Below are positions 13,918 through 34,900 of a stretch of 64,000 bases of DNA, one piece after another (positions within the stretch are counted from its first letter, which is position 1; each line of letters starts with the position of its first letter). Below the pieces are notes generated by a model. That model saw only the letters and a program-made list of their open reading frames with translations, made no database searches and was not told the origin of the DNA. The DNA lies in contig NC_045698.1 of the NCBI RefSeq assembly GCF_009834535.1, positions 68,510,001-68,574,000 of the forward strand, in the 5' to 3' direction. This stretch comes from Camelus ferus. Its lineage: Eukaryota. The position numbers were made by a program, and so were the translations under genes.

Positions 13918-14829
13918 TGACTTGTCAGATTAAACAAGTGCCTGCCTCCAACATTAAATACACTGTTTCAGCAGATCTCAATAATTATTAACAAGCTATA
14001 AATAGGCTCTATTTTTATTATAACATTATTAATAATCTTAGGCAAATATAGGATGTCATGAGTCTAGTTATTGGAATCTTGAAAAAGTAACTTAGAGTTG
14101 TCTATGGTATAATTCAGGGTTGGGAAGATAGAAACACTTTGTTTCAAAGAAATTCCTATAAAATACCCAGAGGTGTAGCCAATTTTTATTCACCCTTTAA
14201 AATATTATATATAATTCAAAACAGAAATTTAAGGACTGAGTTCAGAAGTGACATCTAAAGGTGGGATAGGAAGCCAGGGCCACACCAGGGATCAGGACCA
14301 AGTCTGGCTCCTGGCAATCCATTTAGCATGGTTCCCTTCTTATTACTATCTATGATCTTTTGCAGACTCTCAAACAACTACAGTCCTTCCTCTCTCTGAG
14401 TGACCGCTGACTTCTGCAGCCCCAAATACTGCCTTTCCTTTGGGCTGTTTTGTAATCAGGAGTGTCTGAGTCAGCACAGCTACCTGTGAGCTGGTCCCTT
14501 GGAAGTCAAATTTCCTACCCTTGGCTTCCAGCTTCATCCTTCACTAATGTAGACTCAGCTTACTCATTAGTGAGAAGAGATGATATTAACTAAAGACTAC
14601 TAAAAAAATAAGTCCTTTATGTAAAAGATTTACCAGTACACATAGCCCAGGGCAAACTTTCAGCAACAGAAGAAATTATGTTCTTTTTAATATCTCAAAA
14701 ATAATTCAGGGATGATTTGAAAGTCTTATTTGAGTATGGCTTTCACACACAAAAAAGTGGGTTTTGTGTTAATTGCCTATCATGAGCTCAAAAAAAAAAA
14801 AATCCTAGAAGTGTATAATGTATTATAGG

Positions 14830-15670
14830 AGGAGATGGAAAGTATTACAAGGAGGTTGATATTTAAATTGGATTTTGAGCGATGTGCAAGAGTATGCCAT
14901 ATTAAAGGAATGAAAGATGGAGTGTAGAAAGAGAACAAACAGTTATTTGCAGGCGTGAGTGAATTTGGTTCTGTTTAGGAATTACTCTTAGGGATTGATG
15001 CATGGATTTCTGAGCAAGAGCGAGAGAACAAACTGAGAAGGGAAAGAAAGGTTCTTGGGACTAGACGATGGAGGGTTTCACTAAAGAGGTTAAAAAGTCT
15101 TGAATTTGTCAGAAGGTTGATGGTGTTATAAACAAGGGATGGATGTAATCAGCTTTGTCTTTGAATCTGCTTCTGTGTGAGAATGGAGTCACAGGGTCAG
15201 GGAGACCAGCACAGAAGATCTTATAGTTGTCCCAGTGAAAGATTATAGTATCTCAGATTATTTTAGTGTCAAAGGGGTTGGAGACAAATCTGTGTAGTCA
15301 AGAGGTATACAGTTATAATTCATGACATTATATTCTTTGTAGGGACTGAAGAAAATAGATGACAGCATTTTGGCCTTAGTAACTAGGTGGATGATGATAC
15401 TATTTGTTAAGAGAGGAAACATAGAAGATGAACATGGGTAGAAATGTGGGGGGGGGTATTTACCTTTAAATACTTTACATTTGCCAATTAGCAGTTGTCT
15501 GTCTGAGTGTGGACGTGAGGAAGCATTTCCAGGTTGAAAGATCACCTTAAAGGTGTTGGTATAAAGAGACCACTGACAGCTGGAATGGAGGAGACAGCCT
15601 GCAGAGGGCACGCAGCAGCAGAAGAGCCGAGGACGGGCCGCAGCCCACCTGTACTTCGTGCCCTGCACAG
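14830..15670 (-). mobile_element. L2 fragment
   Basis: Purine-rich L2-like sequence (gaaagatcacc, gagaagatcttatagttgtccc). Confidence 0.65.
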
Positions 15671-16997
15671 TACACCTGCATGAGGTAGATATTCCACAAG
15701 TCCTGATTAAGATTCGATAAGAATGAATAAAACCCTCTCATTTTAAGGGTCTTCTCAGTGCAAAGATAAACTTCCGCAAATTTAAATTTTTAACGTTGGG
15801 CTTGATCTGCTCTGTCCCTGCTGTGTAGCAGTTAGCTGGCAGTGGCCTGACTTCCTGCCATGGTTCTAGGGGATGGGCACTGAGGCTCTTTCCTTGTGTC
15901 CTGGGACACAAGATCTGGCAATGGGTACCTCTGGGAATGGCCAGTCAGAGAAAATGTGTCCTCTTAAAAATAATAAGCTTCTCATAGACATTATTTGAGC
16001 TTAATAGGAGCTTCCTGAATTAATGGGTACCTGAGAAAATCTCTTTTGCTTTTTGGGTACTGGAGTGATGGTACGAGAAAAGTAGAAAGAATGAATAGAT
16101 TGAAATTCATGGAAAACAGAGGAAAATTAAATTACATGAGACAGAAATGACAAAGTAGATAAGTCCCTCAGACTGCAAACAAAATGTTAACCATTGCCTT
16201 TGAGGCTGTCCATGTTTGAGTGATATTGATACCCTTATCATAACAACAACATAAATATGTAGTTGGAATGCAATGCTAAGTCGCACATTAAATTTAATCA
16301 TCATTCATATTACCTATGTATTAAAGTCTTAAAAAATGTTAGAAACTCATTAATATTTAAATACTGCCGGGTTTTATACATCAACCCAGGACATATGTGA
16401 CCTTGTATCCTATCAGAATTACACCTTCCCACGTGATTGTATCCTTCTGACCTGACTCTGCAGCAGAAGACCTCCTTCAAGAAGTCTTTCTCTAAAACAT
16501 CACTAAGCAGTGTGATCAGACACATCACCTACTGAAGGTAGGTTTCCTCACTGAATCACCTATTTGGCACCTCAGACTCCCAGGTGCCCTGAAGTGTAGC
16601 TTTGAAATGGTAGGTGACATTCTGCCGCTTACTGTGTTTTCACACAAGGCAGCCCTTGATCATGTTGTCACTTCACATGAAGAGACTCAGATGGAGAGGA
16701 GGTTGACTTTTGCTGCCTTCTCAGAAATGAACAAAGAAGTTCTCTCTGGGAGAGTCAGATCTGGAATTTTCTAACTTGATTGAGCAATATTTCACCGGGC
16801 TGCAAGGCGACCATATGCCACACACTTTCCAATTGCCTTTAGACTTGCTAAATGCATTTATAGACTGAGAACGAGCACTAGGAAAAATGTGGTAGATGAA
16901 ATGAAGTTTTTTTTTTTTCACACTGCCCCTTTTATTATTGTGTTATAAAAACCCAGGCTCAAAACAGATTGAGGTATATTTATCTTTTAATGAAAAT

Positions 16998-17575
16998 CGC
17001 CGGGAGGTTTGAAGTCAAATATTCTTATCTTTTTCTCCTGTCTCCAATGCATGACTCGTTCGCACTGCTGACCTAGCAGTACGGTCCTAGCGGGAGCTAC
17101 AATGATATTGTGGACTGACTTCCTTCAGAAGGGACTTTTAAAGGCGGCAAAGAAGCCAGCGTGCCCCCTTTTAAGCGCCACTGTCCAAGGCTGTGCACGT
17201 CGACTTTTCTGGAGCGCAAAGGGCAGCAAAGTTCAGGGGCGCGTGTGCAGCTGAGAGGAGCAAGTTCTCAGGCCGTGGTCAGGAAGCTGGCCTCAGCCGC
17301 CCCAGGGGCTCTGTGCAACACGAACGGGCTCGAGGACTTACCTGAACTGCAGGTGTGGGAGGCCGTGCGTGTCTACAGCTCCGGGTCCTTTCCTGCCACG
17401 CAGGCGGTGCTGCCGCGAGCAGCGGTGGAGCGACCAGCGGCTCCTCCCCGCCGGGCCCCGCCCCGCCCGGCCGAGCACCGCCCCTTCCGGTTGCCTGCCA
17501 GGCCTCCTGACGCAGAGACGGGCTCTCAGACGCTTGCTTAGTATGAGTGCTCTTCCCAGTTGTTTCCTCCCTCGA
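16998..17575 (-). promoter_or_regulatory. Small orphan CpG island with promoter architecture (GC boxes, ETS, CRE-like site)
   Basis: About 41 CpGs counted by hand in about 580 bp, core 17160-17535. GC boxes at 17446-17484, CCGGAAG (minus) at 17484-17490, TGACGCA at 17508-17514. Confidence 0.75.
17336..17344 (-). promoter_or_regulatory. Consensus 5' splice donor CAG|GTAAGT ending a putative non-coding first exon
   Basis: Plus strand acttacctg; perfect U1 complement about 100 bp downstream of the GC boxes on the minus strand. Confidence 0.6.
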
Positions 17576-19059
17576 TTTTACTTCTTAAGTAAACTAGTGG
17601 GCAAATAACTGGTACTTCTTTTGTTTTTAGTTCCTTCCTGAATTTCAAATTTCGTAACAGTGAAGAGATTGGTTCTTGGTACTGGGAAGGGTGAAATCGA
17701 GGAAAGAAGAAAAAGTAAATAAGGGAATGGCGTTTAAAGCAAGATTGTTATCAGTCAGCATTTCAACAGATACATGTAAAAAGAGCACTCTGGGGAAATA
17801 CAGTAATTTAATGTCAAAATGATTGTAATTTTATGCCTAAATACCTCAACATGAAAGGAACTCTCTTAATCTTAATTAGGGATAGGTGGGGGCATTTTAA
17901 TTTTTTCCCACTAACTACATAGCTCCTGGAACGAATTGCCTTCCAAGAACAATAGATAATGGAAAAACACAGTTGCATCCTACGTTCTGGAGAGCATAAA
18001 TAACATTGCACTGAATTCTCGACTCTGAACTGGAGCAGCATCTCAATCCAGCTGGTAGTAACTAAATGTCCTGTATCTATCAATTCAAATGGAAGGCTTT
18101 ACATTTTCCTCTATTACTGTACAGTCACTTCCTATGAATGAACTATATGCAAATGGCAAAGCAAGCTTGAAGAACCGATTTGGCCAAGTTATTTTTAATC
18201 TATTACCCCTGAATGAAAGCCTCAATCAAATTGTGTGCAGCTTAACATTTAAGGGTTTTTGTAAACTGGTGAAACAAATGTATCTTCTATGTGGATGTGC
18301 TTGTCAGGGACTACCCTACTCCTGCTCTCCCTTTCTAATGGTTCACAGAGCCACTTAGCATCCAGCCAGGGATGGCTGAACAAGCTTGCCTAAATTTGAA
18401 CTCTTCTCCACTCACTTGAGATGGGCAGACCCTCTCCCACCAAAACCTACTGGAGTGTCCCCAAAACTAAGCATTGTCTGAAGAAAAGGGGGTTTCTGGA
18501 AAAAAAATTTAATACATTTTCTTTTCCTCTTCTTTATTTTTCCCTATTCTAAGAAATACTCTAACTTAAAGTCAATTTGGCCATGAAAATTATGTTCATC
18601 GTTGGATTTGGTTGATCAAATTTTGAGCTGCAGCAATTTGTGGTATGAGAGCTAGCTAATGCTGCATGAAAGAAACAGTTAAGCAACTTCTCGAGGGAAT
18701 ACAAAGGGGACAGAAAGGATCTAGTCAACATTAACTGATGGTTAATAATTAACTCATTTTCACATTATTAAGGTTCTTACCATTTATTAAATGTCAAACA
18801 CTACAGTGAGAAGATGATTTCAGACTTCAAGTATTTCCATCATTAATTACCATCTTTTTGTAGAACCAAATACATCCTCAAATGTGACTATAATTTTAGG
18901 TCATTTTAGGAAATTAAAACAAAACAAAACAAATTCTGCAATTAATCTATAAACACTAACAATGCTAAAAGGCACTCTGACTTCAGAGATATTAGAGTAT
19001 TTAAATATCTACGCCTTGGAATCAAGAAAACACAGTAATTAAATAATCCATCCAACTGA

Positions 19060-19420
19060 AAGTATCACAGAACTACTACGTGGCAGGTACTGTGAGAGGC
19101 ACTCTAATCATAACACATGGAACCAAGACAATACAATCTCTGTCCCCAAGCTGTCAACAGTTTGCAGATTCAGTAAGTAATGACAATAAAGTTTGACAGT
19201 GCTTTGATGGGGGAAATAAAGATTGATGTTTGAGCTGAGACCCAAATGATAAATAGATGCTAGTCAGATAATATGTAGTGGGGGCCAGGCAGGGGTTTCT
19301 AAGGAGCTGACCAGAGGAAATAGAAAAAAGGATGGCCCATAAGGTGTAAGTGTCAAGAATGTGATTAAAGAGACAAAAAGATACAAGTTCCCGAAGGGCT
19401 AATAAGGTGAGAGTAATGGA
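19060..19420 (-). mobile_element. L2 fragment
   Basis: ctactacgtggcaggtactgtgagaggcact...gagctgagacccaaatga. Confidence 0.65.
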
Positions 19421-19734
19421 AAACCACATTTAGATCTATAATAGTTATCATTTAATACAGTCAAGGTCCTAGTCATGCTAAGTGCAAATTCTCCCTGAGA
19501 TACCCTTTTTCCTTTGAAGTGAATGGAATTAAATATTGGTGGTAAGGAAACTATTTAAACGGAGGATCAACCTGTAAGTAACAGAACTTTTTGACTTGAG
19601 ACTTAGAGATGTGCACATGGAATACCCTGTCTTGCCCCAGGCAGAGAAATTTCTGCTTTGCATCTGGAAAGCTGGAGGCAGGATATCATCTGAAAATTAT
19701 TCTTCCATCGGAGTATTCCAACAGACAGGATTTA

Positions 19735-19960
19735 AAAATTGTACATTCATGCAATAGAATACTAAATAGCGGTGAAAATAACTCAAATGCTGCTACATGC
19801 ATTAAAATAAATATAGCCCATACATATCATGCTTGGCGAAAAATCCATTGGTAAAATGATATATAAAGTATGATTCTACTTTTACTGAGATTCAAACCAT
19901 GTGTAACAAACTATATATGGTTTAATGATATAAACATGCAGTAAAATTATCATGGAAAAT
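19735..19960 (+). mobile_element. Old L1M (L1MC/L1ME-like) 3' UTR fragment
   Basis: tacattcatgcaatagaatactaaatagcggtgaaaa... similarity. Confidence 0.6.
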
Positions 19961-20399
19961 CCGGGGTTTTATATTCTGTTTTGTTATGAACGTATGTTAA
20001 TATATGTTAATGTTTCTACTAACAAAGAAGGTTATTCCTTACAAGAACTACTCCCTTAGCAACAGCGCTAATATCTAGTGCCCTTAGTGCACAGTATATC
20101 ACAAAGTCTTCTCACCATTAAAATTATTTTCCATTAATTATGACATCTGAGCATATCTAAGTATCAGACTCTATGAAGCCATTATTCTTCTCTCTGGTTA
20201 ACAGATTGAAAATCAGAGATTTCACAGCAAATAAGTGCAGGAGCCAGGACAAGACCAGCTCTTTTGTCTATAGCCCTGGGATGCTTCCCACATAGGCATA
20301 ACCTGTTATTGACTGTGAAAGTCCCTACAATTTATCAAAGAAAGACTGTCTGGGGCTGTGCTCTCCACGTCAATAGTCATTAGCTCTCTGTTGCTATCG

Positions 20400-22800
20400 A
20401 ACACTTTAACAGTTGTTCAGGAAAATCTATGAGTTCAGTATTTGGGGAGGCATCAACCTATGTGTCCCTGATATATTTTTTTTTCCCAGCCAGGGACCTG
20501 ATTTTGATAAAACAAGCTTCTTTGGTTGAGAGTTCTACCTTCTTTGCAGCTGGACTATTCAGATGATTCGGTTTGGGGCCTGATCCTCAGATGTCTCTGC
20601 TTTCTCACTTCAGGGGAAGAATGTATCTGTGTGAGTTCCCAAGGAGTCCTTTTATCTTTTATATTACTTTTCAACTGCCTGTTAATTAGCAATCATTTTT
20701 CATTATGTTTTTCTAGGGTACCAGTTTGGTGCCTAACAATACCCATTCAATTCTACTGTCCTTTAAATGACCATTGCCCCTCTAGCTATCACATGGCGTT
20801 AGGACACCACCTGAGTTCACTGAGTGAGGAGAGAGCCTAAGGCAGTGTAGGCTGCACACTTGAGCCACATGAATAGGTGACCCACAATGCATATTAACCA
20901 CTTCTACTGAACTATTGTTTGTCCCTCAGCTGGTATCTATGACCTCCTTGGGGGGGCCCTGTGACTGAATGACAGACAGGGAAAATTATGGTCTGGCTCT
21001 TATATGGGTCAGCTTAATAGTTTGATGTAAGTGGAAAATGTCCACCTGCTGTCCTTCAGCCCAGTCTAGGTGTGGTCCTACAGGACAGTGGTGAGAGAAG
21101 ACCCTCCCAGGGAGCAAAGCTGGGAGTAGTATCCTTGGTCCTTCACTTTGTTGAGTTGGATAGACAAAGACTGAAAGACAGAAAATAGGACGTCTGGAAT
21201 ATTATATGCAGATGGACTTGGGAGAAGACACAAAATTTGTGGATTATTGTGTGTCTCACATTAACATCTGACAGAGACATATAGCCCCTCTCACTGAAAA
21301 GAATTTCAACTGCTAGGTGGACAAGATGGCCCATCCTGCTAATGTCAGTCAGCTCATTTCTCAGCTGGCACAATGTTTGAACAATGGGCTGTTGAACAGA
21401 TTGTCCATAGTGGCTGAGATGGAATTATGTGTCGACTGAAAAAAACACACAGCCTTAAAGTTGAGAGTTAGTTTTCTTTGGCGGACATTTCTGAGAACCT
21501 AAGCCTGGGATGCAGCCTCTTAGATCCCTCTAAGAGGGGGCTCGGAAGAGACAAGGGAGGAGCCAGGTATATGAGTTTTGGCAACCAAAACCAAGTAGTG
21601 GGAATATCAAAAGATTACTGTTAATTAAAGAAAAGCAGGTAACTCAAGTTAAGGAATTAGGGTTTTTCTGTGTATGGGAAGGTGCAAAATTCTGGGCTTA
21701 CTGAAATTCTTCCTTTGATATGCACCATACAACAATTTAATCTCACCAGAAATGACATAGTCCTGGATATGGATTTGCTTTTCCACGCACAGTGCCAACC
21801 ATACCATCCAGGCTCTTACAAATCCCTAATTCATTGGAATGGGATCTTGCAAATTTCCTCAGACTAACAAGACAATTTTACGGCAAAAATGGTGAGGCAA
21901 TGGATGAATGTAAAGTACCATTACCATGGAATCTACTTGCATCTTTATATACCTTATCACCACAAAGTGCCAAACTAATATGATAATGGAACTACCTCTT
22001 AACTGCTCAGTAAAATGACAGCTCAGAGCCAAGACACCATGCAGGTTTGGTATGCTGTCCATTAAAATGTGCAATATCCGTTAAACTTATGGCCATTATA
22101 TGGTGCTATGTCCCCAATATCTAGAATATCAGTCCCATAACCAACTAATAAAAGTACCATTGGCTACTCTTCCTATTACTCCTGTCAATCCATCCTGGAG
22201 ATTTGTGCTTCATGGAGTCACAATTTAGACTCTGCTAGATCATGTCTTGATTTCTACTGGGGGGATGTTTCTTCCAGGGGACACAATAAAGATCTCAAGT
22301 GAACTAGAACCTAAAATTACCCCCTCATCCAATTGGGCTGCTCATGCCAATGGGCCAGTAGGAAGGAAGGAGGTTTTCATGCTGGCAGGGTATTGGCACT
22401 GATCATGACAAAGAGTTAGCGAGGGTGCTATTTGCTAGTTAAAGGGGAGGGCATGTCTGGGACCAGGAAGACTCACTGCTTGGCTCTTGGTGCTTCAGGG
22501 CCCAGAAATAAATCTGAGTGACACTTGCAGCAATCAAGGTCCACTACAGACAAGTCAACTAAGTGCTCAGACTCCTTGAAGATTTGAGTCTCCCCCTAGG
22601 CAAGAATGCCACACCAGCTGAAGTGATGGAGCTTTAAGAAAGAGATAATGTACACCGATTATGGCTTGCAATGATTTACAGATGGTGGGACTATAGCTGC
22701 CAAGCTAACCCTCTTATATAAACTCTTCTGTAAAGTTTACAGCCAACTAACAAATTGGAGAGTTGGTTATGGAGGGCACAAGCCTCTGCATGTGGTACAC
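20400..22800 (+). mobile_element. Highly decayed ERVL-class internal (pol RNase H/integrase-like) remnant
   Basis: Segments such as ggacagtggtgagagaagaccctcccagggagcaaagctgg and aggtggacaagatggcccatcctg resemble ERVL pol consensus; no open frame; boundaries approximate. Confidence 0.7.
21430..21728 (-). mobile_element. Truncated ERV1-type LTR inserted into the ERVL remnant
   Basis: tgtcgactgaaaaaaa...aagattactgttaattaaagaaaa...gatatgcacc matches a common laurasiatherian LTR in reverse orientation. Confidence 0.7.
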
Positions 22801-23237
22801 TGGAAGGACTATATTAAACACCTTGTGTAGTACCTTATTTCTTCTCTGCCTCACCTCTCATTCCAGTCACTAATTCAGCAAAAAATATTGTGCAGACAGT
22901 GCCTCCTGTCACGCGAGCATTGCCTCTCTTGCATACTGCTCAGGTCCTTTTCTAGCATATGCTTTGGGACACCTGTGGGAGCTAGCTTACAATTCATATG
23001 TGCAACTCAGAAGTTCAGGGGGTTTATGACTCATAAAGAAACTCTCAAGGGGAGATTGTGTCTGATGGATAATTGCTTCCCCTTTACATCCCTTGAATCC
23101 TGAGATCCTTATCATAAGTTTCCTCAGATAGTCCAAGTGGGATTGCGTACTCAGTATTCACAGAAGCTGTCAGTTTAAAAACACATCTTTATAGAAGCTT
23201 TCTTTCCTTCTCTGGTACACCTTCCCTGTAGCTTAGC

Positions 23238-23406
23238 CCACTCAGTCTGCTATAACCAAATATAATAGGCCAGGTGGCATACAAACAACAAACATTTATT
23301 TCTGCCCATTCCGGAGACTGGGAAGTCCAAGATCAAACCACCAGCAGCCTGGTGTCCTGTGAGGGCCTGTCTCCCGGTTCAAGGTCAGCCATCTTCTTGC
23401 TGTGCC
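23238..23406 (-). mobile_element. MaLR (MLT1-type) LTR fragment, truncated by a gap
   Basis: aacaacaaacatttatttct...ctgggaagtccaagatcaa...gccatcttcttgctgtg is typical of MLT1. Confidence 0.8.
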
Positions 23407-23585
23407 NNNNNNNNNNNNNNNNNNNNNNNNNNNNNNNNNNNNNNNNNNNNNNNNNNNNNNNNNNNNNNNNNNNNNNNNNNNNNNNNNNNNNNNNNNNNNN
23501 NNNNNNNNNNNNNNNNNNNNNNNNNNNNNNNNNNNNNNNNNNNNNNNNNNNNNNNNNNNNNNNNNNNNNNNNNNNNNNNNNNNNN
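23407..23585. other. Assembly gap (179 N)
   Basis: Run of n. Confidence 1.
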
Positions 23586-26286
23586 GGCACCCTGGTTCCT
23601 CACTTCTGCTTTCTGGGAGCATTTACCCGATAGACTATTTGCATTAAAATGCCTTTGAGCTGTGTTTTAAAAGGAAACCTAAACTCTGAATGTGACATAC
23701 AAATGCACATTTTTCTATGAATAGATTCTTTATTTTATTATCCCCACATGTCCATACATCTGCCATTTTATAAAGCATCAGAATAGATAAGATTTCAAGA
23801 GGTATGGAAATAAAAAGACAAGAAAAATCCTACTGAAACACATTTTAGATAAGGACAGAAGAAAAGGAGACCCCAGAGAAGAGAGGATATAATCATTGAG
23901 TGAGAAGTGGTATTAGGAGACTCACATTCCACATCTTGGAAAGTTTGGGCACATGGATTTTCAAATTCCAGGATCCCCCCAAAATCAAACTTAAAAGTCA
24001 TGATAATCTGAAAACATGTACTGAAGTGCTAGAAATAAATCACTTTAAGAAGTCATTACTTAGAAGCAAGTACAAGATGTGTTCTTTTATGTGGATTCCT
24101 TCAAACTGGAAACACCAAGTAAATGTTAACACAAAGACACTTGGAAGTGGAGGGTCTTGTGGATTGTTTCAATAGGTATGTGGTTACTTGGCTTTGGTGG
24201 TAAGTGCTTGGTTTAGGGTCAATTTCAGCTTTATTTAACTTTGTAATTCAACAATGATTCTGGAGAAGTACGGTAAGGAGCAGGGGTGGAAGTTGTAAAA
24301 GTTCCATAAGCAGAGATTGTTGAATATTTCCGTTTTTTAGAATAATAGTTTCTCAAACTCTACTGTTTATATCACTAAAAAAAAATGCAGCCTGCTTCTG
24401 TTCTTCGTGGCTTCTGAATGGAGTATTGCTTGTCTTGATTTTGCCACCTGACTACAAGTCACGCTCAGAGCAGCCTGTGTCCTCTGCCTGGCCTCCTCTA
24501 TGCCCCCTCAGCTCTCTGGGCACTCTAGGAATAGAATACTTGCCACCAAAGGAAATGATTATTTCCTTGTTAGTCTCTTTCATCTAAATTTTGATAACCA
24601 CCAGGAAAAGTACTCCTCATGTTTCACAGACTGCCTAGTAGGTAGTATTACTTTATAAATGTTGAATCAATTTTAACCATTTCATAAGATAAATTATTTT
24701 TTAGGTTTCACATACCATCAAATTTGCACATGCATACATATTAAATGAGTTTATAAATTCACATAAGAAAAACATGCCATCGGTGTCTATAGAAGGAAAT
24801 AAAATTACCCCATAAGTGAATGCCTCGTATACTGATAAAAAGTAGGAGTGAGAATATTGAATACAAATGATTATTCTAACTCACAAGAACACTAACAGCT
24901 ACAACAGTGTCCATAGAAAAGCAGAAAGTATACTTACTTTTCTTTTACTAAGCCTATGTTTTACCTTTGGACATTCAGCAAATAAGGTCTTAAAATAAAA
25001 TATAAGCCCATATTTTAAAAAAGAAAAATCTTGACTTATTAGGAGAGCCTTCAGAAACATTTCTGCATAATGGATGTGGTAAATATGAAACATCTGAGCC
25101 TGCGTTTACCCTGTTACTATTCTGTACCTGAGAGACAAACGATCTAGATCTGTTTGACACAATGACCTCATGCCCAGTTGCGGAGACCAATGAACATAGA
25201 ATCCAAAGCAGAGCAACTCTGGTGTAGTGATCTTTCCTGGAGAACATCTGCTACCAGCTGAGTGTTTACTCTTTGGCGGCACTGGCAGATGTGCTGGTAG
25301 GCAGCCCATCTGTGCGGTGATGGGAGGCTGGAGCGAAGGAAGCTGGGCTGGGCAGACAGAGCGAGCTTACTCTAATACACTGACTTGTTCCAGAAAATGC
25401 AAATTATTACCTCATAGCATGTTTCTTTCTTCCTGTGCTATTAATGTTTTAAAAGCTAACTAATGTGTGCATTGCCCAGCAATAAAGTTTAGGTCTGGGA
25501 CTGCTCCTAGGAATGTTGTCACGGTCGAATTATTATTTTAGAAAAGAGAGCAACTGTTACTGTAAAAATATAAAAAGTTTAGATAATAAATATGTAAGTT
25601 TAAAATATTTTCCTATTTGAAAATATTCAAAAATATTTTGGCCTATGAGAAAAGAACACATTGAATAAAGTAAGCATCAACTTTTCTAACTGAAGCTCTT
25701 ATCTGTTCTCTTCTTTTGTATTGTTAAATTCAGAAGTGTTATATCCAAAATCTGCTCTGCAGGACATCATTTCACACTTAATGGAAGTTATATACAAAAT
25801 TATCAATGACTTTTTAAACAATAAAATTTCTTTCTTTATTGCAAGATTTCTCAGCTCTTTTCCTATGTTAATGTATTTTCTGAATCTCCAAGGAAGAGAT
25901 ACACAGAGTTGTCATCCAAAGAGCACATTTTTTTGTGGAGCATGTCCTGGACTAGTATTCTCTTGTGTTTACTTGAGAAATTCGACTTTGAGGATTGAAT
26001 CAGAAGCCATCAATCTGGAAGCAAAACCATTTTAAAAAGAGAGCTATTTATGTTGGCATTCAATTCTTTCACATAATTTGTTTATTGAGATTCCAGAAAT
26101 TAAGCACCTAAGTGACTGAAATCTATCTTTTAAGAATGGATTAAACAATACTTATACATTTATATCTGAGATTATTTGTTTACTTTTCGTTCATGCATGA
26201 TGAAGATAGTATGCAGGGGAAATCACTGAGCTGTCCCCTTAATCTGGAGATTAGGTTACTCTCATTCTCAGGAAGAGAAGGAAACT

Positions 26287-26289
<3 letters not shown>

Positions 26290-26318
<29 letters not shown>
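26290..26318 (+). repeat. Poly(A)29 tract
   Basis: Direct reading. Confidence 0.95.
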
Positions 26319-26321
<3 letters not shown>

Positions 26322-26739
26322 ATGTAAAATAGATGAACTTAGCCATCTGCAGAATTTCAACCTTAAGATAGTTCTGTAAATAGTTGCTACTAGTGAGAAT
26401 GAAACACCCAAATTCATTCAAACTGTAGAGGAATCTTATAATTAGACTTTAAAATAAATAAATTTTGTGAACCATAAAGTCAGATTCTAACATAAGAGTA
26501 ACCCAGTTTGCATGAAAAAAATGCAGGAAAATTTGCATCAAAAATTGGCAGTTTATACAGCACCATCCAGGACACATTGCCCTGGAAGGCACAGTTCTTC
26601 TTGTCACTCGAGAGGATCGTTCTTTTTTCATTTATTAGACTTTCCCAAAGTCTAAATTATATACCCCACCTATAGACTTACCTCGACTTTTGATCTGTGC
26701 TCAAAATAGACGGTGGTCACTGAAGTCAGACAGACCACT

Positions 26740-26880
26740 TGAATTTAAATCCTTGTTTTCTCACTTCTGAGCTTTGTGACCTTCAGCAAACCACAAAATC
26801 TCTCAGCTAATCTCATCTGTAAAACTGGATGTTGTAGTAAGCATCTCATAGGCTCATGGTGAGGTCTGATTATATCCCAA
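26740..26880 (+). mobile_element. MIR SINE
   Basis: tttgtgaccttcagcaaacc...ctcatctgtaaaactgg. Confidence 0.7.
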
Positions 26881-27593
26881 GAATAAATCAGGACTGCCCA
26901 TTGTACATGGATCTTTGAGAGTAGAAGGTAATTATGCACATACAAATAAGATCGATATTCATCAACCATTGTTCATGGTTCATTGTTGGTTTCTAGAAAT
27001 GCTTCAACATTTTAGAAGGCTAAAAGTGAACTCATGAAAATAAAGGAAATAATTTCTAGAGAAAATAGTGCAGTCTGAGAACACAGACTAGCTAGTTACA
27101 GAAAGCCATGGAAGATTTAAATATTTGGTTTTCAGAATCCTCTTCTGGAAGGTAACCTGCAAACAGTAGCAAGTGGGTGCAACGGCAGTTGACATCACAA
27201 GTAAGAATGTGCGGGGCTTAAGGAGCCACTGGCCTCCTCATCCATGAAGCTGGAGACCCAGTGACAGCAGCCAGTGGGAACATGAACTGGAGATAAATGA
27301 CTGTAACTCGTGTGACACTCCGTTCCCTCAACCACAAGCATAATGCACCACACAGAAAACTGTTAAAGAGGTTCTGATGTTCATGGGGCTTTTGATAGTG
27401 TTCACATTGACATACATACACTTTACAATAAATGATTTGCCAAACTGCCGATGGCTGGGGCTGAGGGGTAGGGAGAACAAAGGCGCCAGCTAAAGCTTGC
27501 TAAAGCTTTTTCTTACCTTATGTTGACATGTAAGGTGGAACCGAGGTCTTGGATATAAGAGATAAGAGAGAAATTGAAAAAAAGGGGGGAGGG

Positions 27594-27604
27594 TTTAATT
27601 TATT
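27594..27604 (-). terminator. ST8SIA4: Probable distal polyadenylation signal of ST8SIA4 (AATAAA overlapping ATTAAA)
   Basis: Minus strand ctgtaaAATAAATTAAAccc, followed by a U-rich downstream stretch (ttttttcaatttctctctt). Confidence 0.65.
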
Positions 27605-27929
27605 TTACAGTTTTACAAATGATAAAACAATAACACCCAATTGCTATACATAAACAATAGGGAAACAGTGTTGAACAGAATGAACTTGACAGAATAAACC
27701 TCAGCTTTCAATTCCACAAATGATGTAAGAAATACTCAGTAGCAATTATCCTGTGCAGCAATGCTATCTCTGTAAACTTTTTTTTTCCTGCTATATACAT
27801 TTGAAACACTTGTGCTTTTGCCTACACAAAGAAACAGTATCATTAAAAGGTGCTACTTAAATGGGGAGACACAGGGTCTGAAGCCACAATCTGAAAACTG
27901 CAATTCAAATACATGGCCAGCTTCAAGAC

Positions 27930-27975
27930 TTTTTTTTTTTTTTTACTTTTAATTTTTTTTTTTTTTTTTTTTTTT
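27930..27975 (-). repeat. Compound A23/A15 tract (mRNA sense) inside the ST8SIA4 3' UTR
   Basis: Plus strand T15-ac-tttt-aa-T23. Confidence 0.95.
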
Positions 27976-28177
27976 AAGATTTGGATATACTAGACCCTTA
28001 TTTTAACTCTAGGTATGAACAGCATAGAATTCAGTTATAAAGTAGCTCCCTTTAAAGCAGGTTAGTAACTGAAGTCTCAAAAGAACTTCTTTATTCTAAA
28101 GCGGTCTTATCTCCAGAGTGCTCCACAGGGCAGCCCCTGAAGATGTCAGCATTACACAAAGCTAGTGTGTGTATATT

Positions 28178-28332
28178 NNNNNNNNNNNNNNNNNNNNNNN
28201 NNNNNNNNNNNNNNNNNNNNNNNNNNNNNNNNNNNNNNNNNNNNNNNNNNNNNNNNNNNNNNNNNNNNNNNNNNNNNNNNNNNNNNNNNNNNNNNNNNNN
28301 NNNNNNNNNNNNNNNNNNNNNNNNNNNNNNNN
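28178..28332. other. Assembly gap (155 N) inside the ST8SIA4 3' UTR
   Basis: Run of n. Confidence 1.
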
Positions 28333-28606
28333 TGAACAATAACCTTCCCTCACTCCATTTGCAAAACACTGGTATATTGATAATGTCTGATGGGGAAACT
28401 CTCAAAACTTGTAGAGGTAACAACTAACTATACATAACTCTTCCTACACCCCTTCCACAATTACAGATATTCCCAACAATATCCACGGGAAAATGAGTCT
28501 TCTATGAACTAAATACCACACTGTGTGAATTATGACTAACCGGCTCAATTAGAAATAAATTACTTTGTTCACCCTTTTCCTGTGTTGTAGCTTAATAACT
28601 AGTTGG

Positions 28607-28614
28607 TATGTACA
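28607..28614 (-). promoter_or_regulatory. Pumilio response element (UGUANAUA) in 3' UTR
   Basis: mRNA-sense TGTACATA. Confidence 0.4.
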
Positions 28615-29071
28615 CAACCTATAGCTTATTTAAATAAATTTCTTCTGTAAGCATATACGTAGAAATCCTCATTAGCAATGGATAGACATTTCCTACGCTA
28701 GACGATACATAAAGACATCGGAATGCCCGGCACCTTCTTCAGGTAGAAAAACTTCCAGTCATTTCATCAGTCCTGTGGGCCAAATCATTGGATTTGCCCA
28801 GAAGAATCTGTTACTAAGTTATCTGTTTCTTTTGTATTCCAGCAACTTAATATTAAGTACACGACAGGCTGGGTAATAATGATGAAAATGTTCCTACGGC
28901 CTACTCTTGTCAACAGCACGGTAACAACCACGTTCTCTGAAGGACAGGAATAGTTCACAATCAGCTGCCCGAGCACTGCCAGGTACAGGGTTACATCGTG
29001 GAAAAGAAAGAAAAAGATTAAAGCTGTGAACATATGATAGTCTCAAAAGGAAAAAACAAACAAACAGGTGT

Positions 29072-29079
29072 TTCAAGTA
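29072..29079 (-). promoter_or_regulatory. miR-26 8mer seed site in 3' UTR
   Basis: mRNA-sense TACTTGAA. Confidence 0.6.
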
Positions 29080-29772
29080 TGTATTTATAATCTGATTTCA
29101 TCACGCTCCCTTTTGCCCCCAATGGGTTAAATCTCAATTCTTTTTCTTCCTTTTGCTGTTAGCCTTCGGTGACGTCCTTGCCCTGTCCCTGTGAGAAGGC
29201 CACAGCGGATGTGAAGGGGGAGGGACACAGAAAGGTATCCAATAGGGAATGAAATGGTCTTGTACAGTTTGTCTTTGAACACTAACTGCCTTTAATTGAA
29301 TTCATTCTTGAGTATTGAAAGTTCCCTGAGATGAACAAAAGTAGTCTCAGTCGATACTGAAGCCCTTTTTACATGCTGAGCATATTCAGAACTGGGCAAA
29401 GTATTTAGAGAACACAAAGCCTACGGCAACAAAGCCACGTGAAGCTAAAAAGGCACTACTCAACGCATCTACGGGATAAACACCACCGCACAGAACAGTA
29501 AAGGTCTGGGACGCTTTTGCTGTGGCCTTAAAAGCTGTTTAAATGCATTTGTTGAAAAATGCAGTAAAAACGGCAAGGTACCTTGCTGCTGCTTCTTGAG
29601 ACATACTTTCAGTGAGTTCTGAGATGGATTTTATCTATAAGGATTTACCTGTGACTTCAAACATTTCTGTTGAATTCAAACTAAAGGCTACTCAAACAAC
29701 CTGTCTGCAAATAGTCCAAATTAGGTAATTAACCTATTTTGGATTCATTAAGTAAATCCGATTTTTCAAGTT

Positions 29773-29780
29773 TACATTCA
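29773..29780 (-). promoter_or_regulatory. Second miR-181 8mer seed site in 3' UTR
   Basis: mRNA-sense TGAATGTA. Confidence 0.5.
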
Positions 29781-29989
29781 AAATATGGACCCAATTCTTC
29801 AAAAATTTCCAATAAATAAGAGGTTCAATGATAAAAGCACATCATGTTCTATCCATTTTTAGCTATGCATCTCCTTTATGGATTCTATTTTGTTTTCTCA
29901 GAGATACATAAATTCTCAGAAAATATAATCTTCTGTATCCCAAGGTTCTACCATATTTTAAAAAAGAATACCACATACTATTAATATAT

Positions 29990-29997
29990 TGAGAACT
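29990..29997 (-). promoter_or_regulatory. miR-146 8mer seed site in 3' UTR
   Basis: mRNA-sense AGTTCTCA; plus strand tgagaactg equals miR-146 nt 1-9. Confidence 0.6.
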
Positions 29998-30029
29998 GTA
30001 CTACCATGAATATCCTTTGTCCTTGAAAA

Positions 30030-30150
30030 CATACATATAGTCTCCATGCTATTTCTTCTTTTTTCAGACTGTCTTCCCTAAGGAACAAAACATATATACT
30101 CCTCATGCTATTTCTTCTTTTCTCAGACTGCCTTCCCTAAGAAACAAGAA
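30030..30150. repeat. 59-bp tandem duplication in the ST8SIA4 3' UTR
   Basis: catgctatttcttc starts at 30045 and at 30104; a few mismatches between copies. Confidence 0.9.
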
Positions 30151-31396
30151 GTAATCTATGTTGTTTCAGGTCAAGAGCAGAAGTGGGAACACAGCACTTC
30201 TGTTTTCTAAAGAAACAATTTACCATCAGAATTACCTACCAGCATACTAATTACCAGAAATTGGCCTACTAGTCAATTCTGCTATATGTTAAAAGTTTTT
30301 AAATTTTTATTAATAATTTCATGTGCTTGTATGAAAACACATTAATGTGATAACGAATAAATTTAACTACAGAAAAAAATACTGGTTAATTTAACTTGAA
30401 GTGCAAAATACTGATGTACAGTTTCATTGTTAAACCTCTTAAAAGTAATGATGTCTGTGATGAAAACAACACTCTATCAATCATATTATTTCTGCACTAA
30501 GAGAATTTAACAATAATCTAGAGAGCGTGCCAGTCTTTCCATCTGAATAACAAGGGGGATATCAAAGAACTAGAAGTCACATTCCAGCCCTATCAGTTGA
30601 ACATTTACTCTAAAGGGCAAAATGCTTCCACAAAATCATTATGAAATGTAAAAGCTGTGGAATCTTCCGTCAAATAAAAATAAAGTTTGAAAAGTTTAAA
30701 ATATCCAGAGACAACTTTTATATTAGTAGCATAATAATATATTAATATATTATCTTCATGAAAGGAGAATGGTTTGTTGTGTAGACACATCATTATAATC
30801 TTTGGTACCAAAAGTACATTTTTTTTTCCTGCTAATTTTATCATCTCAGATGACACAGAATATCTTTCCTTTAGAATGGCTCACGATTACCGAGTGATAC
30901 AGTTTAGATGGTACCTTCTACACCACTGGAAAAAAATCTGGAGGTTTACAGTTGTGCAAAATAAAACCTTTTTACAGAGTCATTGTGGGATAACTCTTTA
31001 AAAATATAAGAACTTCAAAAATGATCACTTGCAGGTTATTCATCTCATTCATATTTATCTCAGAAAGGATTTCTAAGCATCCCGACACCAAAACCAAAAG
31101 AGATTCCAGAAGGCAAAGGAGAACAGAAACAAAAACATAAAATTCATGATCAAACACAGAGTCCTGACTGAAGGCATTGACTTGAGTTGTTTAATCTGAA
31201 GGATTTCACTGCTCAAACTGTTTCCCTCTTGATTTCTGCTGACAGGACGCTTCAGTTTTCCCGAGGGCTGAGTTGTGTTCCCGGGTGCCTCTTCTCATGT
31301 GCTTGGCCTTGCAGTGGCAGCCCAACAGTGATGAACATATTTGCTTCATTAACTAATGACAAGTGCATTGTTGGATCTTGTAAACACTACTGTTTA

Positions 31397-31404
31397 TACA
31401 TTCA
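31397..31404 (-). promoter_or_regulatory. miR-181 8mer seed site in 3' UTR
   Basis: mRNA-sense TGAATGTA (plus strand tacattca). Confidence 0.65.
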
Positions 31405-31642
31405 AACTGTGTTCTTAGTGGAAGTGGCACTTACTAGGACCCTTGAAGTCAAAATACATAATTTTTAGAGCACTTTGCAGGTATTTCATCAGCTGGTAGT
31501 GGATTTCTCATGAATGTCCTTTATCACCTTTCAGGTAAGTGGTGGATGCTGAAATCCAGTCTTGTTTTGGATCCTATTTGCAAATCTCAGGAAGCATCTT
31601 CAGAAAAGAAGTGCATATTCAGTCTGTATTTTCAGATGTGCT

Positions 31643-31925
31643 TTATTGCTTTACGCACTTTCCTGTTGTCAGTTTCAGAGCTCCTCTATTATGCAGCACA
31701 TTTAATGTTTTGAATTCTAATGGCATTCTATGAGGACTTGCATTGGAAAAGTATCTATACTTTAAGTCATCATAGTAATGATATTTGACAGGTTTTCCAT
31801 TCAAATCCTTAGGGAATGGCCAGAATCCGTATAGGTGAATTTCATCACAGAATCTTGTGGCGAGTGTATACATGAGCAGACCTGTGCTGGGTCTTTTGAT
31901 GGGAACTTTGTTTGTCAGCCAGTAA
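31643..31925 (-). CDS. ST8SIA4: Last coding exon (human exon 5 equivalent) of ST8 alpha-N-acetyl-neuraminide alpha-2,8-sialyltransferase 4 (polysialyltransferase PST); encodes the last base of G266 through Q359 and the stop
   Basis: Translation [93 protein letters not shown] matches the ST8SIA4 C-terminus as I recall it: end of the PSTD, sialylmotif S, motif III (HYYD), VS motif with His331, and Cys292/Cys356. It starts right after a canonical ...ttttttcccccAG acceptor. The length of 283 nt equals the coding part of human exon 5. The track's GTG start at 31945 is intronic. Confidence 0.98.
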
Positions 31926-31965
31926 CTGGGGGAAAAAACACACACACGAGAGAAGAATTTAGAGA
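31926..31965 (-). promoter_or_regulatory. ST8SIA4: 3' splice acceptor and polypyrimidine tract of the ST8SIA4 last intron
   Basis: Minus strand reads ttcttctctcgtgtgtgtgttttttcccccag|TTACTGG; the AG is at 31927-31926. Confidence 0.95.
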
Positions 31966-34900
31966 AACACTCAACAAACCCTGTAGCAAGTCTACTACGT
32001 ATAAAGTAAATAAAATTTGAGAAGTAAGTGTATGAATGACATTCAAAAGATTGCTGAAGAAATAATACATTCCTTAAGCATTTAGAAAATTGAATACATT
32101 TATTTTATTTTTCTTACCCTTTATTTTCTTGCTTATTTTTGAGGTCATATGAATAGCCAGGGGACCTGGAATGTAGGTAAATATGACTGTGGAATCTTAT
32201 ATACAAAATGAACTAGCAGCAAACATTTTACATAGTAGAATCTCCTCAGAAAGGGTTAAACATGACTGCAAAAGGCACAGTAATTGGGCAGTGACTTAAG
32301 TAATTTTCCCAGAACAGAAGGATTGAAACTACGACTAAGTTTTTCAAATTCTTTAATATTTCAATTAAAAACTTAAACAAATAAATGCTTTGCCTGTATT
32401 ATATTAACTGACTTATTCAACTCCAATTTCCAAGTCACATTTTACTACAGCTAATTAAGAATATAGCCTCAACCCACAGAACAACATAAAACAAATATTT
32501 GTAAATAGTTTACCATTTATGCAGTTTAAAACTTTGTTCAATAGGTAAAATATATTTCAATGCTGATATGTATTTTATAGTACTCATTTTAAGAGGCAAT
32601 AAAATATTCCAAAATGTCTGATCCACCATTGTTGCCAAACTTTGTTCATCTGAAAAGCATGCACACTCATAAGTTAATCATCACCTCTGGCAGGGAAGGA
32701 GGTTTCCAACACTTGGCATATTCATTATCTTATGTGGAATAAGCTAAAAGAGGAAGAATATGGATCTTCTCTTACTTTCAAAGCTGTCCAATTATAAATA
32801 AAGTTAATAAATTGCTTGGTTTTTTAATTTTTGTTTTTATTATTATCTCCTATGTAGGGAAATATATACCCAGCCATCCAAATATGAGATCATTAGATTC
32901 TGGTTGTTGCTGTGTTTAAACATTTGCCTTAGATTTCACATAATATTATTTCCTTTTTCTTTTAAAAAATAATTTTTGAAGCTTTCCAAGGTAGATCAAA
33001 TACATCTAGAATACTGAATATGAAAAGAACAAAATTTTGTTTTAATTCTTTTGGTTAAAGAAATATTGGACTTTCAAACCTCATTACAAACATCCAAAAC
33101 ATGGAAAATACACTTATCTATTATTACTCCTGTGTTTTGTTTTGTTTTTTTTCCTTTGTCTTCTTTTTCCCCCTACCTTTGAACCAGGATTGACGGTTCA
33201 CATTTTCAGTTTTGCTTGTTGGGTGAAGGCCATGTGCTGAATGTTGTGCACCAGGTGAAGTGTATTGCGGAACTTCTGTTATCACAAGTGTTTTGAGAAA
33301 GCATATTCTCAGGAAAGAAGATTCATAAGGAATTTTCAGAGAAGAACATGTATGAATTTCCTCATAACTCAAAAGTATGAGCAAAAACTTTAGCACGTAT
33401 ATTGCTCACAACATGAAGAAACCACAGAGATTTCGTGCATGGAGCATAGTTAATCTACAGATTGAAGGCACTGAAGAAACAGCCTGAAGCTCTCGCAGCT
33501 CTGAGAAAGCAGGTGTTATTAACATGAAATGATTATTATAGAAAAGTTCTGTGAGCATGATCTGTGTGTGGTTACAAATGTCAGCTGATGCAGTGGGTTC
33601 CTTTAAAGAGTACATTTATTTATAAATGTTTATAAAAAGTATATTTATTTATAAATGTTATAAATGTGGGTGAAGCAAGTTCAAACTCAGTCGAGAAAAT
33701 GGTTATTTCCATCAAAGAATGTCACTTATTGGGAAGTTTGGCAGCATGAAGGTCATGCTGAATTATCTTATTTCTCAAATGAGGGAAAAAAAATAGCTAG
33801 GAGAAAATAATATGAGGCCACATTATTTGTATGGGACCCCAAGGTCACATTATATATAAGATCACATTATAAACAAGCTTTGTGATGTTTGACTTTGAAC
33901 AATTTGAATAATTTCAAAGAAAATTAAGCTACTCATTTGTCAGGATATTTTTGGAGAAACAATGCAAAATAAATGCCTCTTATCTTAATAATTTCTAAGA
34001 ATAAATCACAGGAAAGCAGGCCTTAATAAATGGCATCAACATGTAACAGATAAATTGAAACAAAACCTTAAAGCATGTCAAGAACTAAGGCCACAAGCAG
34101 TAACATTTTGTGTTAAAAGACACAGGAGTGGATCCGAACACAATCAGTAAGAGTTTTCTATGTGCTTACTACAAATATAATGTTAGGTTTGAAATTGTTT
34201 AGGCCAACCTCCAGTATCAAGTTTCAGTATTTGGCCAAGAACATAGTATAATTTTAAGTATCTGAAAGTATTTGCTTTTATCTAAAAAGCTGACATTTAA
34301 AAAACTACAAATTTCTTGTGAAGGTTGATCAAAAACAGACTATTAAGTTTTTAATCCGAATCAGGAAAATAAGGCACTGATAAAATAATGAACTATTCAT
34401 GCTCTAATTCAGCACAAGCTGCCCTAATTTTTATCTCAAATTCTTATCTGTTCTAGTTTAAAATTTAGCAATGTTTTCAATTTAGCAAATAATCTAGTTT
34501 CCATGTATGTATTCCTTTTTACAGAAACTGATTTTTTTTTAAATTATAAAATCAATGCAGGTTCCCTGCAGAAGATGTGAAGGAAAAAAGAAACGAATGT
34601 GGAAGAAAAATATTACCTATAGTCCAATCACATAGAGAGAATTATTGTCGTAATGTCCTGCCCCTGTTTGTTTCCCTAGCTGTTTGGATCTTCATATATA
34701 TTACACTCATTCATAGACATACACAGAACGTTTCTCATCAGCTAGGCTGTTTTATTTCAGGTATTATTAATTCTCTCTCCCCTGCCTTCCCTTCTGCTTT
34801 GGTACTCTAATACTTTGTCTTGCTGTATGAAACAAACTCACTCTGCGTTTGATATGTAAGTTTTTGAACATTTCTAACTTTTATAGATGCAATACTCTCC

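Follow-up and report, generated by a model that had tools for sequence, protein, structure and literature searches.

A candidate orphan CpG-island promoter with a consensus minus-strand splice donor downstream of ST8SIA4 in Camelus ferus

An apparently orphan CpG island is located downstream of the sialyltransferase gene ST8SIA4 in Camelus ferus, at positions 16998-17575 of the window, by which is meant the whole 64,000-nucleotide stretch of DNA that was analyzed (NCBI RefSeq assembly GCF_009834535.1, contig NC_045698.1, positions 68,510,001 to 68,574,000 of the forward strand). The island is probably a genuine, unmethylated one with some regulatory or promoter role. At roughly even confidence, it is read here as a promoter of the Sp1/ETS type that probably drives a minus-strand, non-coding transcript with a first exon ending at 17342. 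A first-pass annotation of the same DNA had proposed the promoter of an unannotated spliced transcript; the proposal is sustained as regards a genuine CpG island, a promoter-type order of motifs, and a consensus splice donor on the minus strand, all in a segment in which no repeat, retrocopy, RNA-gene relic, or coding exon was detected; the start site, strand, splicing, and any function of the RNA are inferred.

Composition and genomic setting

The island, to which no strand is assigned, comprises 578 bp with 41 CpGs, a G+C content of 0.611, and an observed-to-expected CpG ratio (CpG o/e) of 0.76, set against background values of 0.369 and 0.22, respectively, for the whole 64-kb window; the earlier description of a sharp island of about 41 CpGs in about 580 bp of CpG-poor DNA was thus accurate. 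Within the core (17350-17500), G+C rises to as much as 72-82%. Length, G+C, and CpG o/e all lie above the Gardiner-Garden/Frommer thresholds (at least 200 bp, 50%, and 0.6) as well as the strict Takai/Jones ones (at least 500 bp, 55%, and 0.65). No other part of the 64 kb has island values: the eight CpG-richest 500-bp intervals all overlap 16998-17575, and the runner-up region, at about 28.5-29.1 kb, contains at most 12 CpGs per 500 bp. Neither TpG (o/e 1.06) nor CpA (o/e 1.10) is in excess within the island, and its CpGs are therefore not undergoing deamination decay, as those of a decaying CpG-rich insert would be. A high CpG o/e without an excess of TpG or CpA is the typical look of germline-unmethylated DNA, and the ratio of 0.76 found here suggests that the island belongs to this class.

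The nearest coding exon is the last one of ST8SIA4 (sialyltransferase family 29; 31649-31921, minus strand), with the stop codon immediately downstream, and no coding exon occurs within 14 kb of the island. The identity of the gene is given by the open frame at 31649-32104 (minus strand), which contains the C-terminal part of the protein (Glyco_transf_29, Pfam PF00777, E 1e-23), ends in ...TTGKCVKQ before a stop codon just below 31649, and shares 96-98% identity with ST8SIA4 proteins. The distance from this stop codon to the island is 14.1 kb. Candidate ST8SIA4 poly(A) signals are found at 26636, 26086, and 25840, and the 3′ end of a bat gene model that includes the UTR aligns at approximately camel 25,900, such that the island lies some 8-9 kb (8.4-9.2 kb) beyond the likely poly(A) site; the "10 kb downstream of ST8SIA4" of the first-pass annotation is a fair approximation. 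According to the same annotation, no human gene is known at this position, which agrees with the HGNC-named genes tabulated for a human 5q deletion (PMC6552940 supplement; unnamed lncRNAs are not included). No gene is tabulated just downstream of ST8SIA4, and between FAM174A and ST8SIA4 there is only RN7SKP62, about 74 kb from ST8SIA4.

Some further features of the window may be recorded. Its longest open frame (15261-15737, minus strand, 159 codons) has no Pfam match, adjoins a strongly G-skewed stretch (14800-15400, GC skew up to +0.52), and may be an old repeat. Runs of N occupy 23407-23585 (179 nt) and 28178-28332 (155 nt), the second of these within the ST8SIA4 3′ UTR.

Promoter-type motifs and the splice donor

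In the 5′-to-3′ direction of the minus strand, the island presents a CRE half-site, the ETS core CCGGAAG, a group of GC boxes, about 100 nt without an ATG, and the splice donor CAG/GTAAGT, in that order. The CRE half-site, TGACG(CAG) at 17508-17515 of the plus strand, is the most upstream of these motifs in the minus-strand reading (its TGACG, 17508-17512, becomes CGTCA when the minus strand is read). The ETS/GABP-type core is a motif match at 17484-17490 (minus strand), and it is followed by the GC-box cluster (17446-17484, minus strand), which includes three canonical minus-strand GGGCGG hexamers (17458-63, 17463-68, and 17478-83) and one G-rich variant at about 17447-52, and which sits partly within an imperfect 20-nt tandem duplication; an additional GGGCGG occurs outside the cluster at 17297-302. 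Every motif listed in the first-pass annotation (TGACG, CCGGAAG, the GC-box region, and the donor) is present at the place assigned to it. Its count of four GC boxes is slightly generous, as three are canonical GGGCGG hexamers and the fourth is only the G-rich variant.

The donor is a perfect U1-complementary site at 17336-17344 of the minus strand, in which 17342 would be the last exon base and the intron would begin with the GT at 17341-17340. On a simple donor matrix, with frequencies taken from general knowledge, it scores 12.5 bits, which is the matrix maximum and the best score of 127,982 positions, only 18 of which reach at least 10 bits; the donor proposed earlier at 17342/17341 is thus the top-scoring one of the approximately 128,000 positions. 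Each strand of the window contains the perfect 9-mer once, against an expectation of 0.23-0.24 per strand, and about 0.001 is therefore expected in any given 300 nt of one strand. (The other perfect CAGGTAAGT in the window, at 31532-31540 of the plus strand, falls within the ST8SIA4 3′ UTR, some 115 nt from its start and in antisense orientation, and is probably a chance occurrence.) The consensus 5′ splice site thus stands at first-exon distance, about 100 nt, from the GC boxes, and would close a putative first exon at 17342-17445 (minus strand) of about 100 nt, free of ATG, whose 5′ limit is drawn from the motif positions only. The donor is spanned by a perfect 15-nt palindrome, ACCTGAACTGCAGGT (17340-17354), so that both strands have a CAGGT donor core, the minus strand as CAG/GTAAGT and the plus strand as CAG/GTGTGG, the latter (last exon base 17352) being a weaker, moderate site of 9.6 bits.

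The absence of ATG, claimed earlier for about 100 nt, is real and extends considerably further: the minus strand is free of ATG from 17759 to 17052, a run of 709 nt and the longest of its kind in the window. As dinucleotide shuffling gives a P(0) of about 0.03, which is mildly unusual, and as the plus strand likewise has an ATG-free run (441 nt), this property is largely one of composition.

Occurrence of the island in RNA libraries

Sequencing runs were sampled by words, and the share of words from the island core (17200-17560) was estimated, run by run, and compared with that from the surrounding 4 kb (14500-18500), of whose words those of the core should be a subset. In two runs with records labelled RNA-Seq, the core exceeds its flanks 7-fold and 21-fold, respectively: a metatranscriptomic RNA-Seq cDNA run (X11) contains about 13 of the 34 core words (38%; flanks about 5%), and a random-primed cDNA run (X12) contains about 16 of the 34 (47%; flanks about 2%). 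A transcriptomic RNA-Seq run (X28) contains 23% of the core, with flanks below the listing threshold for the 4 kb, and a run of the same study (X7) has the opposite pattern (core 9%, flanks 31%). The shares in X11, X12, and X28 correspond to a contig of about 115-200 nt somewhere in 17200-17560, each share amounting to one short, strandless contig per run in which RNA and GC-biased carry-over of DNA are not separable. Such a length would be expected of a short exon and no less of a short bidirectional promoter transcript. The runs thus weakly support the presence of something of the island core in RNA libraries. Runs of two further studies (P1 and P2), marked "RNA?", cover 27-80% of the whole 4 kb and are uninformative because their contigs total 0.5-1.0 Gb, a large fraction of a genome of about 2 Gb; they are possibly DNA libraries or heavily intronic ones. 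Exact patterns from the island (a 22-mer of exon 1 and the ETS...CRE pair) had no match in JGI metagenome contigs.

Promoter or distal regulatory element

In the preferred reading, the orphan island would be kept free of germline methylation and would serve as a Pol II promoter without a TATA box, of the type that combines Sp1 with ETS/CRE sites, with an unannotated and probably non-coding transcript as its product. The start site would lie at about 17400-17480, within the GC-box cluster or a little past it, and the productive direction of transcription would most likely be that of the minus strand, the same as for ST8SIA4. The minus strand is favored because of the perfect U1-binding donor about 100 nt downstream, at 17342; this donor would have two roles, defining exon 1 and preventing use of the AATAAA close by, at 16936.

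The nature of ST8SIA4, a neural and immune gene under developmental regulation, lends some weight to a different, possible though rather unlikely, role for the island as a distal regulatory element. It would then act as a booster of a poised enhancer or as a site of Polycomb/CXXC tethering, perhaps for ST8SIA4 itself, and its transcription would be unstable and bidirectional, with no defined spliced RNA. Orphan islands have been described as boosting poised enhancers (bioRxiv 10.1101/2020.08.05.237768), and several of the present results agree with such a role. The GC skew over the putative exon is approximately zero, and there is therefore no strand signal of the R-loop type; the signal in the sequencing runs covers only about 115-200 nt of the core, as short bidirectional transcripts would; and convincing downstream exons were not found, in that a strict acceptor-donor matrix scan of the minus strand below 17341 yielded no more than two or three possible internal exons (6252-6112, 9586-9312, and 6193-6112), so that a multi-exon model is unsupported. 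Against a purely regulatory island stands the U1 site, a perfect 9-nt match some 100 nt away from the GC boxes that is expected about 0.001 times by chance and is typical of productive first exons, together with a grammar of Sp1, ETS, and CRE motifs that is typical of promoters. Promoter and distal regulatory roles are, moreover, not mutually exclusive.

Direction of transcription

CpG-island promoters are usually divergent, and the island promoter could fire mainly on the plus strand, toward the 3′ end of ST8SIA4, or both ways to the same extent, in which case the minus-strand donor would be incidental; this is considered unlikely. The poly(A) signals speak in its favor: the minus direction meets an ATTAAA at 455 nt and an AATAAA at 510 nt, whereas in the plus direction the first 1.2 kb beyond 17575 contain neither signal. 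Donor-like sites are also available on the plus strand, at 17352 (9.6 bits) and 17885 (8.3 bits), and the evidence from the runs, being based on contigs, carries no direction. In a rightward transcript, however, the first of these sites would precede the GC boxes, whereas the minus strand has the strongest possible donor at the usual first-exon distance. The case for minus-strand transcription accordingly consists of this U1 site and of the longer ATG-free run on that strand.

Origin of the island

The island might also have arrived as a lineage-specific insertion in minus-strand orientation, reaching from about 17575 to 16907, that is, as the retrocopy of a GC-rich RNA, unspliced or non-coding, or as another retro-element with AATAAA and a poly(A) tail at its end, island-like in composition because it is young or landed in an unmethylated state. 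This origin is judged improbable. In its favor is a retrocopy-like 3′ end that the minus strand shows some 510 nt past the GC boxes, in which a poly(A) signal (AATAAA, 16936-16931) is followed, after a 12-nt spacer, by a genomic A12 tract (16918-16907), the classic 3′ end of a retroposed RNA (16936-16907). The AATAAA at 16936 may be the poly(A) site of an unspliced short transcript or the tail of an old retro-element; the A12 tract would cause internal priming in oligo-dT libraries. No target-site duplication flanks the segment, as comparison of the flank at 16890-16920 with 17500-17800 pairs only chance 10-mers, and a young retrocopy or repeat, which would keep its duplications, is therefore unlikely. 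An old insert would have lost its CpGs unless protected, and would then be a functional island anyway. The A12 tract, furthermore, is separated from the island itself by about 90 nt and is embedded in AT-rich DNA, and the segment contains a consensus donor.

Homology searches likewise provide no parent for an inserted copy. Neither a parent gene nor an RNA family was detectable among 5.8 billion proteins, in Pfam, or in Rfam at E ≤ 1. The two longest frames of the island (140 aa on the plus strand and 101 aa on the minus strand) have no match among those proteins, in a search that would miss ORFs under about 55 aa; the only ATG-started ORF of the island (17102-17251, plus strand) returned nothing on exact look-up; and no Pfam family was found in five open frames, three of which lie over the island. 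A GTG-started ORF of 46 aa occupies 17338-17478 of the minus strand. Rfam families matched nowhere in the window at gathering thresholds, nor in 17038-17800 when the cutoff was relaxed to E ≤ 1; no tRNA-like sequence or SINE head was found in the island; and when 16850-17700 and 15500-19500 were compared by BLASTN with the remainder of the window, only poly-T matches appeared. The earlier remark that the island could not be matched to a repeat or retrocopy is thus borne out by protein, Pfam, Rfam, and tRNA comparisons and by the lack of a second copy in the window. An RNA-gene relic (no Rfam match even at E ≤ 1), a tRNA-derived SINE (no tRNA-like sequence), and a coding exon (the sole minus-strand ATG in about 800 nt opens a frame of 21 codons) are rejected.

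Comparison with other mammals bears on the same question. The ST8SIA4 gene and its 10-kb flanks were compared in two horseshoe bats, cattle, four equids, a pangolin, Molossus, Myotis, and the cat. The ST8SIA4 3′ UTR and the DNA beyond it are collinear with the camel sequence and 72-86% identical (loci L001, L003-L009, L015-L019, and L023). Because the recorded gene range ends at the stop codon, the flanks stop at camel 21,200-23,000, short of the island, with the one exception of a horseshoe bat (L001, GCA_014108255.1), in which the collinear alignment reaches camel 18,613 and then ends abruptly. The last 2.4 kb of the bat locus (104035-106403) has no match in camel 1-33,000 and contains no CpG island. 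This interruption, with no island counterpart in the remaining 2.4 kb, would suit an insertion in the camel lineage; nevertheless, the unaligned tail includes at least one bat repeat, an element of about 400 bp that is repeated elsewhere in the locus, and it may simply be a bat insertion.

Two side observations arose from this comparison. At least 8-13 kb past the ST8SIA4 stop codon are collinear in bats, cattle, equids, pangolin, and cat (18613-31646), which is unusually well preserved for non-coding DNA. In Myotis brandtii (L021, KE163134.1), a single scaffold carries two records of one ST8SIA4 protein; one of these records is a 283-bp "gene" with the last exon only, a split of annotation or assembly on a gap-rich scaffold.

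A variant of the promoter reading, in which the promoter newly arose in camelids or in the camel, possibly seeded by an insert ending in AATAAA and A12, and drives a young spliced lncRNA co-oriented with ST8SIA4, appears doubtful at best. If true, it would offer a datable de novo birth of a promoter and first exon in collinear, well-conserved intergenic DNA.

Significance

About half of mammalian CpG islands are orphans, many with transcription initiation, and orphan islands with promoter features number more than 10,000 per mammalian genome (PMC2944787); the present finding is therefore useful for annotation and not surprising. The island is plausibly an ordinary orphan CpG-island promoter, and would be more interesting only if lineage-specific. 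Confirmation would give the camel annotation a transcription unit that it now lacks, probably a lncRNA, beside ST8SIA4. This gene encodes a polysialyltransferase of interest in the nervous and immune systems, and the island could also mark a regulatory element for it.

Comparison with known systems

The island resembles a processed retrocopy in having an AATAAA followed by a genomic A12 tract at its minus-strand 3′ side, and differs from one in lacking a target-site duplication and parent homology, in having a consensus donor, and in being CpG-rich. A closer parallel is found among the TATA-less Sp1/ETS (GABP-type) island promoters with a strong first-exon 5′ splice site, for which the U1-versus-poly(A)-signal model of promoter directionality is used: as in such promoters, a GC-box cluster stands by CCGGAAG and a CRE half-site, there is no TATA box, and a consensus U1 site is located about 100 nt downstream on one strand. 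The asymmetry of poly(A) signals, in contrast, is the reverse of that in the model, as the proposed sense side has an ATTAAA at +455 and an AATAAA at +510 and the antisense side has none for 1.2 kb.

With the orphan islands of poised enhancers, the present one shares its small size and its distal position beside a developmentally regulated gene (bioRxiv 10.1101/2020.08.05.237768); unlike them, it has a consensus donor and an ETS/Sp1/CRE grammar that point more to a promoter. Finally, the orphan CpG-island promoters of Illingworth et al. (2010; PMC2944787) were defined by CAP-seq or bisulfite data, H3K4me3, Pol II, and capped 5′ ends, whereas the camel island is known from its sequence and from word shares in RNA libraries. 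It is like these promoters in being intergenic and apparently far from annotated promoters, in having the usual CpG density and size, and in combining promoter-type motifs with hints of transcription in RNA libraries.
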